A stretch of 64,000 nt of DNA from Octopus sinensis (taxonomy: Eukaryota): NCBI RefSeq assembly GCF_006345805.1, contig NC_043011.1, positions 64,244,464-64,308,463 of the forward strand, written 5' to 3'. A model generated the notes under the pieces. That model saw only the letters and a program-made list of their open reading frames with translations, searched no databases and was not told the origin of the DNA. The translations under genes and the position numbers were made by a program. Positions within the stretch are counted from its first letter, which is position 1; each line of letters begins with the position of its first letter. Shown here piece after piece: positions 26,665 to 57,638 of this stretch.

Positions 26665-26764
26665 GTGTTGCGATATCAGAGGATTGCAATGTGTGGGCAC
26701 AAAGGAACTGTGGCGTATCCGCATCGTATTTCTTCTCACTCGATTCTGACAAACGTTTTTGCAG
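26665..26764 (+). CDS. Gene B exon 2: GVAISEDCNVWAQRNCGVSASYFFSLDSDKRFC(R)
   Basis: tttttag acceptor, gtagat donor, 100 nt, phase 1 to 2. Confidence 0.92.
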
Positions 26765-27249
26765 GTAGATACACATTCAAACTATAAGAATTACAATTAC
26801 AATCTTTCAATATTGCAACTTGGCCAGTAAACAGAATCGTTAAGAGACCAGGAACAATGCATTGCGGCATTTTCTTCAAATTCCGCCGAAGTCGACTTTG
26901 TCTATCATTTATTTCGATGGCGAAAAAAAAAGTACCAGTCATGTACTGAGCCCCATGTAATTGACTTACTAGCATTACCCGAAATTGTTGGTCCTTTAAT
27001 CAGTTTCACAAGATACAATTACTTTCTTCATCATCAATATATCCATCTATCTACAACAGTTATTTATACATGTATTTAGCTATCTGTATATTTGTCTATA
27101 TATTTCACTGTCTATTTATCTTTCTATTTTTCTAACCATCATTGTTTCCATCTGCATTTACCTATCTACTTGACCATCTATCTCTCTTTCTACATATCGA
27201 CCTATCTATCAAACTATCCATCCATCCATCCATTCATATCTCTGTATGT

Positions 27250-27530
27250 CTGCCATTTTGTCTATCAAGATGTGAGCCGCTGAAAAAGGTGGCAGTATTA
27301 AGAATACATCGGAACCCTAGGAACTGTGAGTAAAAACCTTGAGACGTACATGGAACAAATAGGGGATGCAATAAGGTTGGGGCACCTGCGGAAAATGCGC
27401 TGCTTGGAACCGCTGGAATACTTCGGAATGTGCTCGAAAGGTAAGAGGTGTTACCTTTGTTCACTGGTAAATAACAGCTTACACTGTAGTACATCTCCAG
27501 CCTTAGAAGCTGTACAAAGATGGTGAAATA
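27250..27530 (+). mobile_element. R4/Dong-clade LINE 3' end with (AAT)n tail
   Basis: Remnant LGTVSKNLETYMEQIG...LLGTAGILR..VL typical of the RLE-clade C-terminus; (AAT)n at 27530-27562. Confidence 0.7.
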
Positions 27531-27562
27531 ATAATAATAATAATAATAATAATAATAATAAT

Positions 27563-28285
27563 GACTAGAGCAACAACAAATATAATAACAGCACTAAATG
27601 CCATGAAGACATAAGGCTAAGTTCAGAAATGGTAAAAACGGAGTTAAGAGAATTCCTAAATTAGAGGAGCCCTGGACCGGGTGAAGGCCAATGCATAAAG
27701 AAACTGATAGTGTTCCGTGACAGAATATCGAAACAGCTAGATGAATGTTTGCAGAATGGGGATGTACCCAGCTGGATGACAAAAGGGAGAGTTGTTGTTG
27801 TGTGCCAATGATCGCGAAAAGGGAAATTTTGCAACTTTCCGTTAATGTGGAAACTAATGACGGGTACGTTGGACGGCGAACAATATAGATACCTGGAAAG
27901 CGCTGGGCTGCTACCCACTAAACAATAAGGGTGCCGAATGAGGTGTTGAAGAACAAAGAATCTTCTCTTAATTGATAATCTAATTATCAGGAACTGCAAG
28001 AAAATGTGCACAAATCTGAGCATGGCATGGGCAGACTATCGTAAAGAATATGATATGATACCCAACTCCTTGATAATAAAAGCAATGAAAATGTTTGGAG
28101 TAGCAGAAAATATGAGAAGCTTTATATAGAATAGCATGAAATGTTGAAGAAAGGAATTTACAGCAGAGAAGGAAGTATTAGGAGGGGTGAAAATCAAGAG
28201 AGTTATCTTCCAGCGAGTGAGTGTGTCCCCACTGATTTTCGTGCTGAGAATGATCCCCCTGAGCGAAATACCACAGAAAGATTTA
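27563..28285 (+). mobile_element. R4/Dong-clade RT fragment
   Basis: Degenerate SPGP..., VPSWMTKGR, LMWKLMTG, LSMAWADYRK.YD, IKR.IFQ..VSPLIFV motifs. Confidence 0.75.
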
Positions 28286-55500: not shown

Positions 55501-55934
55501 GAGCAAGGGCCTTAACATCTACTTAATGTTTGCAGATGTTAAGATTATTTTCTTTTCCAACAGTCTAATCTCTTGAGTTTATGTGAATAATAATAATGAT
55601 AATAATAATAATAAAAATAATAATAATAATAATAATGATAATGATAATAATAATAATAATAATAATAATAATATAATAGTAATAATAATAGTAATAATAA
55701 CAACAACAACAACAATAGAAATAATAACAACAACAATGATGATGATAATAATAATAATAATAATAATAATAATAATAATAATAATAATAATAATAATAAT
55801 AATAATAATAATATTAATGATGATAATAATAATAAACAATAAGGAATATTTTCACAGATACGACGGCTTTGGGACCTACACGGGATATATACCAACACTA
55901 TGGAATACCAACAGAAAAAAAACAACAATATGGT

Positions 55935-56990
55935 AGTCGCGAAAAGATCTACGTACCTAGTGACCGATTAAAAACGGTGAAATTGTCCGTGAATGCCGAC
56001 ACAGCTCACTCAACCTAGATCGTGCCAGATACACATCAACGTCTCCAGTTTGCAAAGTAGATGTTCTTGAGCTAGTCGAAACTGAAGACACGAGAGTTGA
56101 CCATATTCACGTATCGAGTGCAGCATACGAAATATTTACCATAGATAACCATTCTCCTTATTCATCAAGTACCTGCTGCTATATATTGCGGCAATACAAA
56201 CGCGGATGATGGGAAAGAAACTCACAGCCTTCAACACAGTCCCCAAGTATTGCTTGTCGGGCATATCAAAAGCTTTAGATCGATTAAAACTGATCAATGT
56301 CCACTGATGTCATGCAGTTTACGTTCCCGCTCTATGATATATCTCATGGGCTGGATGTTGAAATGGGTACATGAGCTCCGAATGCGCTTAATTGCCTTTC
56401 ATAAGTGAAAATTTCGACCCGGTTCGTCAACACATTGCTAACACCAATGGTTCGGAATCTATATTTATCGAAATTATGTATTGAAAAATGTCTGTGTTTC
56501 CAATACTTGTTTGAGATAATTATTAGCTGCACCACTGCACCACAAACTAATTTTAAAAAGGCAGATCCTCGAAACCAGGCAACCACTTGCTTCGCTCAAT
56601 TCTACAGTCGTCTTCATTTAGTGCAACACTTTGCCCCTTCTGTCGTACGTCGTGGTAGGCACTGAGGTCTCTCCGCCTAGATTCACAATTAAACTTATCC
56701 TGCCGCTCTTCGACCCGATCACTTCAGTTCAAAAGCCTTATACATATGCTTGTTAACAAGCAACAAGTGAACGTTGCGGTCCACAGACGATCCAATATTG
56801 ACTGTTTCCACATTCTTTCTCCACCACTAGGACCAGTCTAATGGCTTTTTCTACTGCGAGTTATACAACTCATGCACACTCTCTGACAATGCAGCTTTCG
56901 TACCTCCTCGATCTCATTCCTTGGTTATCTCTGGCCATTGACTATAATCTCGCTGGAAAATCCATATTGAAACACATGTCTAAAATATTT
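55935..56990 (-). mobile_element. Tx1/L1-like RT fragment
   Basis: Reverse complement shares long stretches with 28290-28790 (e.g. ctcagtgcctaccacgacgtacgacagaaggggcaaagtgttgcact). Confidence 0.65.
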
Positions 56991-57550
56991 ATTCATTATC
57001 AATTCATTCCGCTTTTTATTTATCATATGATATCGTGTACCACTGATATTTGTTTTCATGTGTAGCGCTTGTCAATCTATTCTAACAATTTTCGGGGGAA
57101 TGCATATCAAATAATAAGCGTCAAAATTTAAACATGTTAACGATTATGATGACTTTATATGTTTGTACCTTGCCCTAGAATTGCATTGCTAACAACCTCC
57201 CTCCCGATACCTAAATCACTTCTCTACTACAAATAATTGTTTTTTTCATCCTTGGAGTTATCACCATTATTATTATTATTATTATTATTATTATTATTAT
57301 TCAATAGCTTTATATTTTTATAGCGTGCTTTCACTTCACTCTCAGTACACATATATGTATGTATATATATATATATATATATATATATATATATATATAT
57401 ATATATATATATATATATATATATATATCCGGTATCATAACCACGATTGTAATGAGAAAAATTAACTTTCTTGTAAAATAGAATTGAGCAACATAAATAT
57501 TTATGCCCATCCTTCTATGATACTGACAGGTTCATTTTTTTTTCTTTCAG

Positions 57551-57638
57551 ATTACTCCGAAGGTATAGAGTTTGTCTTTTTGGAATAAGTGATGAATGTT
57601 TTGCATATTTCAGGTTCTACCATTATTATAAATGTGTG
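57551..57638 (+). CDS. Gene C exon 3: LLRRYRVCLFGISDECFAYFRFYHYYKCV
   Basis: ttctttcag acceptor, GTG|gtaaga donor, 88 nt, phase 2 to 0. Confidence 0.92.

Follow-up and report, generated by a model that had tools for sequence, protein, structure and literature searches.

Three copies of one small gene, which we call A, B and C, lie in tandem on the same strand of a 64,000-nucleotide (nt) stretch of Octopus sinensis DNA (contig NC_043011.1, positions 64,244,464 to 64,308,463; hereafter the window). The locus raises the question of why the coding exons of B and C have diverged so far while their cysteine codons have not. The first-pass annotation of the window had proposed strong diversifying selection on a fixed disulfide scaffold. 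We found that the scaffold is real, with six cysteines (Cys) invariant in A, B, C, the O. bimaculoides ortholog of C (C_ob; LOC128249865, XP_052830367.1) and about 20 other members of the family, and that the selection is likely but not proven. Diversifying selection is the best explanation of the B-C pattern, and we give it somewhat better than an even chance of being correct.

The three copies were identified by self-comparison of the window and by tblastn, and further copies of the family lie beyond both window ends at the corresponding loci of O. bimaculoides (L001) and O. vulgaris (L002). In all four genes (A, B, C and C_ob) exon 2 measures 100 nt and exon 3 measures 88 nt, the splice phases agree, and every copy has AG and GT sites at the borders of both exons. 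C has five exons, which correspond one to one with those of the RefSeq model of C_ob; exons 4 and 5 were located after the C-terminal peptides of relatives served as a guide. The exons and upstream blocks are as follows, with UTR standing for untranslated region and GPI for glycosylphosphatidylinositol.

7005 to 7041, plus strand: A exon 1, ATG and signal peptide MKIFIINAFLIS, phase-1 donor G/GTAAGT; the sole pattern-scan candidate 5' of A exon 2
7538 to 7637, plus strand: A exon 2, Cys 1-3; from tblastn and splice sites
9323 to 9410, plus strand: A exon 3, Cys 4-6, donor GTAAGA; from tblastn and splice sites
17968 to 18027, plus strand: A terminal exon, VTMECFLVIAVTIKLLIHM and stop, a hydrophobic tail, then AATAAA; from an acceptor scan and direct reading
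21659 to 22064, plus strand: B promoter and 5'UTR block, 73-85% identical to C 45477-45891, with a TATA-like GGCTATAAAATA near 21838
22065 to 22104, plus strand: B exon 1, MKIIAIFVLVLTF and G, donor GTAAGT
26665 to 26764, plus strand: B exon 2, 32 full codons; the exon 2 of the first-pass annotation
29229 to 29316, plus strand: B exon 3, 29 full codons
44160 to 44192, plus strand: B exon 4, LRNRTDINGDT; read-through gives ...ACSFQCNILLIFHHYARAGVGFHQ and stop
45477 to 45891, plus strand: C promoter and 5'UTR block, with the 14-nt motif described below at 45799-45812
45892 to 45928, plus strand: C exon 1, MKITLFALLLMF and G
49135 to 49234, plus strand: C exon 2; from tblastn and splice sites
57551 to 57638, plus strand: C exon 3; from tblastn and splice sites
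61095 to 61127, plus strand: C exon 4, LNNGADINRDM, splice sites cag/../GTAGGT; structure as in O. bimaculoides XP_052830367.1
62915 to 62974, plus strand: C exon 5, VRLETLLAFAFVTQLMIRK and stop, a GPI-signal-like hydrophobic tail, the stop overlapped by AATAAA

Recounting the B-C differences reproduced the earlier hand counts exactly. Exon 2 keeps 14 of 32 amino acids, all 14 with identical codons, and has 33 nt differences; exon 3 keeps 9 of 29, again all with identical codons, and has 39. In total 72 of 183 nt differ (60.7% identity) and all six Cys codons match. The boundaries given earlier for B exon 2 and C exon 3 agree with ours, and the 68-nt upstream stretch that had been used for comparison is indeed 79% identical without gaps, although it lies at 21659-21726 versus 45477-45544, two to three nt from where it had been placed. 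The exon differences fall on codon positions 1, 2 and 3 in numbers of 28, 24 and 20. The 24 conserved codons, counting the split Arg codon, contain 14 synonymous sites with no silent change, where 3.5 would be expected at the non-coding divergence (P ~0.02, a post hoc value).

To be called fast, the exons need a neutral yardstick, and we took it from the non-coding DNA of the B and C units, using glocal 94-nt windows against a reversed-sequence null together with collinear BLAST chains. Of the 94-nt windows in B's non-coding DNA only ~42% can be aligned, the rest having turned over through microsatellites, short interspersed element (SINE)-like sequences and a retrotransposon; thus "whole-intron identity" is not a meaningful quantity here. 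A global Needleman-Wunsch alignment of the whole unit was rejected since it gave spurious, gap-inflated identities at odds with the BLAST anchors. Along the collinear chain, non-coding mismatch between B and C was 26.0% over 2,961 ungapped positions, with 8% gap columns. Simulated evolution with a matching indel load indicated that a measured 0.26 stands for a true divergence of 0.27-0.28, so that BLAST underestimates slightly, and that DNA differing at 38% of sites or more is hardly alignable by BLAST. Exons aligned in codon register had 38.7% mismatch against the 26.0% of non-coding DNA (Fisher P=0.0002). The 56 non-Cys codons had 42.9% mismatch, with P=1.6e-6 at a neutral p of 0.26, 0.005 at 0.33 and 0.02 at 0.35. 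Windows over exon 1 and the 5'UTR ranked at 78-97% among the non-coding windows.

The mismatches in these exons are also grouped by codon. In the true frame, B-C codons with 0, 1, 2 and 3 differences number 24, 10, 22 and 6, compared with 14, 27, 17 and 4 under a binomial (permutation P<5e-5). Binning the same mismatches one or two bases off frame gave 16/23/18/4 and 14/26/17/4, which is binomial. The B-C non-coding triplets were binomial as well (381/414/153/15 versus 390/411/145/17 expected), and adjacent mismatch pairs there occurred at 1.04 times expectation. The in-frame-only clustering was repeated in B versus C_ob. C versus C_ob was over-dispersed in frame too, and one of its two off-frame binnings (41/12/7/1) came close to the in-frame pattern; C/C_ob non-coding triplets were binomial. 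Because the clustering appears in frame only and the non-coding DNA is binomial, it is a property of codons, which argues for selection on amino acids and not for mutation. Comparing in-frame with off-frame binning, with adjacent non-coding DNA alongside, thus offers a simple way of telling selection from multi-nucleotide mutation.

Several codon-model results agree with this. Maximum likelihood (ML) with the neutral distance fixed from introns, at K=0.30 to 0.47, gave omega from 2.5 to 1.5 with p from <1e-6 to 0.02. A pairwise two-class mixture placed 31% of codons at omega 0 and 69% at omega ~11, with a likelihood-ratio test (LRT) statistic of 13.4 over a nearly-neutral mixture, and a three-sequence mixture of B, C and C_ob had a second class with omega=4.8 (w0=0.37, p0=0.42; LRT 9.0). 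The neutral distance estimated by ML from the coding sequence, 0.31 per site, agrees with the Jukes-Cantor distance of introns, 0.30. Silent sites between A and either B or C are saturated.

Other results weigh against diversifying selection. All selection tests rest on 62 codons and three or four sequences. By the Nei-Gojobori method (NG86), B-C gave dN=0.568, dS=0.450 and omega=1.26 (Fisher P=0.35), and pairwise ML under F1x4 or F3x4 gave omega=2.3-2.5 (LRT p=0.056-0.062). The three-sequence single-omega model (M0) gave omega=1.49 (p=0.25) and the B branch 1.46 (p=0.12). Adding double and triple codon changes to M0 raised the log-likelihood (lnL) to -522.9 from -538.1 with omega=1.55 (p=0.48), and the mixture LRT fell to 1.4 under such multi-nucleotide changes. 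In the Cys domain, C versus C_ob gave dN=0.175, dS=0.173 and omega=1.02, with a mismatch of 0.156 in exons and 0.152 in non-coding DNA, as would also be expected from constraint mixed with neutrality. The alignment matters too: when gaps were allowed, the identity of exon 2 rose from 67% to 74% (70% counting gaps), with an AGGAAC hexamer shifted; among 69 collinear non-coding 94-nt windows this puts exon 2 at the 57th percentile, similar to its flanks, and exons 2 and 3 together no longer differed significantly from non-coding DNA (P=0.19). Exon 3 remained low with gaps, at 64% identity (61% counting gaps) and a rank of 3-7%. The earlier claim that coding exons are more diverged than their flanks thus holds in codon register, and exon 2 becomes ordinary once gaps are admitted.

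We take the ungapped codon register to be the correct alignment, because the exon lengths are identical in four genes and because the frozen codons stay in phase through both exons. A compensated frameshift in exon 2, which the shifted AGGAAC would imply, found no support in the O. bimaculoides sequence, the A sequence or the off-frame binning. An omega above 1 is not established by conventional criteria and the tests are suggestive. On the two points by which the first-pass annotation had proposed to judge its own claim, dN/dS is not significantly above 1 in the standard tests, and an excess of exon over non-coding divergence is present in codon register.

Among the other explanations, relaxed constraint survives best, although we consider it unlikely as the main cause. 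It holds that the truncated B and, to a lesser degree, C drift approximately neutrally at residues other than Cys while a minimal structural core is still purified, and that the apparent excess over introns comes from an underestimated neutral divergence. The state of B favors it. We found no exon 5 homolog between 44193 and 45891, that is, from B exon 4 to gene C, and the exon 4 donor that is kept in C and C_ob is not conserved in B; B is therefore a 3'-truncated duplicate without the hydrophobic tail exon. The B unit ends within the counterpart of intron 4, running into the upstream region of C. Most B-C replacements fall on the branch to this truncated copy with a putative function: in the three-sequence data, B has 25 unique amino-acid states, C has 4 and C_ob has 3. 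The nt changes unique to B are spread over codon positions as 18/19/17, evenly as under relaxed constraint, and B keeps 27 amino acids of the inferred ancestor, within the 21-30 of neutral simulations. No standard test gave an omega significantly above 1, and at a neutral p of 0.38 or more the non-Cys excess would disappear (P=0.11). Yet the calibrated non-coding p is 0.27-0.28 and the non-Cys codons stand at 0.43; DNA at 0.38 would be hardly alignable, and most of the repeat-free part of intron 1 does align. Neutral drift also does not account for the in-frame-only excess of codons hit two or three times, or for what B has kept. In a neutral simulation with 61 changes in 186 nt, the open frame was kept with a probability of 0.06, the six Cys with 0.002 and both with 0.00025. 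All splice sites of B exons 1-3 are intact and their O. vulgaris sequence is identical. B is not a long-dead pseudogene and was under selection for most of its history.

A mutational cause is in our judgement quite improbable. Here the exons would have a mutation rate above that of their surroundings, or would have acquired multi-nucleotide mutations in clusters or minor frameshifts that were compensated, without any selection for change. It would explain why double and triple changes improve lnL by 15 units and remove the omega>1 signal, and the better gapped alignment of exon 2 around the shifted hexamer is of the kind that it predicts. A multi-hit codon model alone, however, cannot separate mutational clusters from repeated selected substitutions. 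Against a mutational cause, non-coding mismatches are unclustered by both measures given above, the exon clustering vanishes when the frame is shifted by one or two bases, exons 2 and 3 are of equal length in the four genes, and the ML synonymous distance equals the intron distance. Chance and ascertainment in a pattern noticed by eye over 61 codons, perhaps with patchy gene conversion keeping some codons identical, is least probable of all: the absence of silent changes is marginal and post hoc and the pairwise omega tests are non-significant, but the codon-register clustering (P<5e-5) recurs in B versus C_ob and C versus C_ob, conserved codons occur singly or in pairs and not in tracts of the kind that conversion would leave, and similarity between the flanking introns is not exceptional.

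In these genes the cysteines and a small number of hydrophobic or aromatic residues stay fixed, as do the signal peptide, the splice sites and a promoter motif. The other ~60% of the domain codons are replaced, often with two or three nt changes per codon, at a rate that is neutral between the orthologs C and C_ob and above neutral between the paralogs B and C. These genes evolve in the mode of toxin, defence and recognition genes, with a frozen scaffold and the remainder replaced at or above the neutral rate. Under diversifying selection, duplication within a birth-and-death cluster would have been followed by recurrent selection for new binding surfaces on the rigid scaffold. B would have lost its anchor-signal exon at duplication and undergone most of its change afterwards, and it may be a soluble or otherwise re-purposed variant.

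The conserved promoter motif is 14 nt long and lies before gene A as follows.

6924 to 6937, plus strand: 14-nt motif ACATCTGTTACAAT before A, 81 nt 5' of the A start codon, with the E-box CATCTG inside

It recurs before B at 21973-21986, as ACATATGTCACAAT, and before C at the position listed above, with a distance of 81-93 nt to the three start codons. These are its only matches in the window, one per gene, where the chance expectation is 0.02. The motif also precedes both O. bimaculoides genes, the A remnant described below and C_ob (L001 5619-5632 and 9909-9922), and we found no occurrence elsewhere in the window or in L001. Since it is kept even between A and C, whose remaining non-coding DNA is unalignable, it is a candidate family-specific element of the promoter or 5'UTR.

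We asked what kind of protein is being varied in this way. A profile of A, B and C matched 22 proteins among 1.84 billion representatives. The source was looked up for 20 of them; all came from Octopus (O. bimaculoides, O. vulgaris or O. sinensis) and were named "uncharacterized" or "hypothetical". Nearly all relatives lie on one chromosome, with O. bimaculoides LOC numbers from 128249756 to 128249943, and some contain two to four tandem domains. The family is thus Octopus-restricted and clustered on a chromosome. Across 19-23 aligned members the invariant columns are the six Cys and the initiator Met, with one Ala nearly so. In A, B and C the six Cys follow the pattern C-x7-C-x16-C-x8-C-x7-C-x11-C; more distant members show slight variation in the second interval (x16).

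AlphaFold2, run on the mature domain with the family alignment, returned an all-helical model with a mean predicted local distance difference test score (pLDDT) of 88.9 and a predicted template-modelling score (pTM) of 0.71. The model has long helices at residues 2-15, 29-43 and 47-61, plus short ones. Exon 1 is predicted to encode a signal peptide. Exons 2 and 3, each with three of the invariant Cys, would form a small helical bundle, presumably closed by three disulfides. The proteins end 20-60 residues past the sixth Cys, C with ...NNGADINRDMVRLETLLAFAFVTQLMIRK, and exons 4-5 appear to encode a short polar linker and a GPI-signal-like hydrophobic segment. We scored a tail when a 12-residue stretch had a Kyte-Doolittle mean of at least 1.8 and ended 0-6 residues from the C terminus. 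By this heuristic, 17 of 23 members have a hydrophobic C-terminal stretch of at least 12 residues behind a polar linker and five are without one. On this hydrophobicity heuristic the proteins are probably GPI-anchored, and the predicted anchor signal would place the domain on the outer cell surface.

Searches with the window's own proteins against Pfam (RGM_N included) and PDB sequences, and a word-indexed search with 63 amino acids (aa) of C, had no matches. Foldseek of both models against PDB gave insignificant hits only, with a best expectation value (E) of 5.4 (for example retroviral matrix and acyl carrier protein). The spliced C protein has no entry in the protein collection, so the window's genes are not annotated there with this product, and a literature search on the family, its LOC identifiers and octopus cysteine-rich lineage-specific genes returned nothing relevant. 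The family is a previously undescribed, octopus-restricted cluster of genes for small six-Cys proteins that are predicted to be helical.

Three known systems help to place it. The first-pass annotation had compared the pattern to conotoxins, lysin and bindin; the comparison applies to the evolutionary mode, and the protein belongs to none of these families. As in hypervariable disulfide-scaffold families such as conotoxins and defensins, the signal peptide, upstream region and introns are conserved relative to a diverged mature region, the Cys framework is invariant with identical Cys codons between young paralogs, tandem duplication is accompanied by copy gain and loss, and there are many multi-hit codons with dN/dS at or above 1. 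Unlike conotoxins, which have three exons for signal, pro and mature regions, the octopus gene has five exons, a Cys domain split over two of them and no propeptide. Unlike the free secreted peptides of conotoxin and defensin type, the octopus proteins are predicted to be helical and probably carry a GPI anchor. Sequence, Pfam and fold searches found no similarity to toxin families. Membership of a conotoxin superfamily was rejected given the Octopus genome, the five exons, the missing propeptide and the lack of Pfam or PDB similarity.

The second system is the N-terminal domain of repulsive guidance molecules (RGM), described as a domain with three helices and three disulfides that is part of a GPI-anchored protein (PMC7354924). 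The octopus family resembles RGM_N (PF06535) in being predicted helical, in its six Cys and in the GPI-signal-like tail of most members, and it shares with RGMB a central FC-x8-C-x7-C motif of identical spacing. The family profile had only three matches in the whole PDB, all to RGMB (4uhz, 4bq6 and 7ndg) over this motif, with insignificant E=1.3-2.1. Weak Pfam RGM_N matches occurred in 5 of 19 members (E 0.0074 to 1), hhalign against RGM_N gave a probability of 7.4% over 30 columns, and Foldseek retrieved no RGM from PDB. The outer Cys spacings differ from those of RGM, the octopus proteins have neither a von Willebrand-type C-terminal domain nor a GDPH cleavage site, and they are ~100 aa long compared with ~430. 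We regard this likeness as resemblance and not membership; homology is unproven and convergence is possible.

Third, the proteins are built like Ly6/uPAR proteins, with a signal peptide, one small disulfide-rich domain, a short linker and a GPI signal, and they likewise occur in clustered lineage-specific expansions with some anchorless, secreted members. Ly6/uPAR domains are beta-rich three-finger folds with 8-10 Cys, unlike the helical six-Cys octopus family, and the two have no sequence relationship. Two other candidates were rejected. A Kunitz/BPTI domain, suggested by "C..C..YFY..C", is contradicted by a Cys spacing other than C-x8-C-x15-C-x7-C-x12-C-x3-C, the lack of a Pfam match and the all-helix model. 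A CHCH or twin Cx9C protein, the automatic UniRef name of one relative (P0144), does not fit the x7/x16/x8/x7/x11 spacings or the signal peptide, and a CX9C Pfam match occurred in only 1 of 19 members (E=0.82).

Comparison with other Octopus genomes gave a view of the history of the cluster. The window is ~76-87% identical to O. bimaculoides CM046618.1 (locus L001), and nearly the whole of its first 47 kb is ~94-98% identical to O. vulgaris OX597831.1 (GCA_951406725.2, locus L002). The identity to O. vulgaris is ~97% in all and places the window in the O. vulgaris species complex. The orthologous place in O. bimaculoides holds, in order, the minus-strand LOC128249864 upstream, a remnant of A, C_ob and a downstream copy, LOC128249866. 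The A remnant has exon 1 joined directly to the last exon (L001 5858-6402 versus window 6986-7298 and 17919-18148), and the equivalent of ~10.6 kb that includes A exons 2-3 is missing. No B counterpart was found at this locus. Non-coding identities were 64-75% for B-C, 67-81% for B-C_ob and 76-84% for C-C_ob. Because both B comparisons lie below C-C_ob, the B/C duplication predates the species split, and B would have been lost, or never fixed, in the O. bimaculoides lineage. The reduction of A and the absence of B there suggest that the cluster gains and loses genes rapidly.

Within the window, A exon 1 is identical to its O. vulgaris counterpart. The A terminal exon is homologous to O. bimaculoides L001 6167-6402 and has the pattern V..E..L..A....L.I in common with C exon 5. 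Exon 4 of A was not located by acceptor scans or by comparison of the window's downstream regions; blastn and tblastx among the three downstream regions returned microsatellites and transposons only. Over the exons that L002 covers (A exons 1-3, B exons 1-4 and C exon 1), the window differs from O. vulgaris only at 7615 in A exon 2, a His/Asn replacement, and at 44178 and 44184 in B exon 4. The deposited O. vulgaris model CAI9735837.1 (P0121; L002 10001-45208) is a chimera that joins A exons 2-3, an out-of-frame B exon 2, B exon 3 and a 17-aa tail mapping to the opposite strand of the window (37271-37221). A, B and C are therefore wrongly annotated in that genome.

The window is AT-rich (~35% GC) and laden with microsatellites, with (TA)n, (CA)n, (AAT)n, (GAA)n and (GTA)n at very high density throughout. 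Rfam and tRNA scans of it had no matches. Two repeat features lie in the B unit or at its end.

30099 to 33710, minus strand: non-LTR (long terminal repeat) retrotransposon with reverse-transcriptase open reading frames (ORFs), inside B's 14.8-kb intron 3
44479 to 44690, plus strand: (GTA)n microsatellite, in the counterpart of intron 4

The B and C units differ in size partly because of this retrotransposon. Its reverse transcriptase had 2,236 matches, with PF00078, among which the only cephalopod-named relative is from Octopus sinensis (63% identity), and an ORF with a Cys/His motif lies upstream of the reverse-transcriptase ORFs. The ~210-nt (GTA)n run stands exactly where the truncated B unit meets the C unit. 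A mariner-type transposase-like ORF fragment (…DRLVTGDEKWIFYRNEKRRKQWL…) is located on the minus strand at 20239-20688, in the interval from gene A to gene B. Gene A contains, between exon 3 and its last exon, a 620-nt inverted repeat of 97% identity (10440-11061 versus 12104-11485), a young palindromic duplication that is present in O. vulgaris too. The introns of A and B carry a ~400-nt repeat family (8138-8537, 9662-10073, 15335-15725, 14015-14270 on the minus strand, and 25485-25705) whose copies are 72-81% identical to each other with an internal period of 184 nt; it is probably a SINE-like element. Intron 4 of C holds a ~450-nt inverted repeat of 70% identity (61618-62074 versus 62872-62422), one arm of which stops ~40 nt short of the terminal-exon acceptor.

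Cephalopod genomes contain lineage-specific expansions of cell-surface and sensory gene families. To our knowledge, neither a family nor a fold has been described for most orphan genes of cephalopods, and their evolution has not been analysed. The genes described here offer a compact case, with an octopus-only cluster, a confidently predicted helical domain, a probable lipid anchor and a conserved promoter motif. A bolder reading, which we hold to be distinctly doubtful, is that the family arose when membrane-tethered three-helix modules of RGM-N-like type radiated in octopuses alone and diversified under positive selection. If this were true, the ligand-binding head of an ancient GPI-anchored guidance and bone morphogenetic protein (BMP) co-receptor would have been cut loose and expanded into a cluster of at least 15 genes, forming a variable surface system for recognition or ligand capture in, for example, neural wiring, chemotactile sensing or immunity, in which truncated copies such as B would be soluble decoys. 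Should the selection on these genes be confirmed, studies of octopus neurobiology, immunity or reproduction would have in this family a candidate recognition system.

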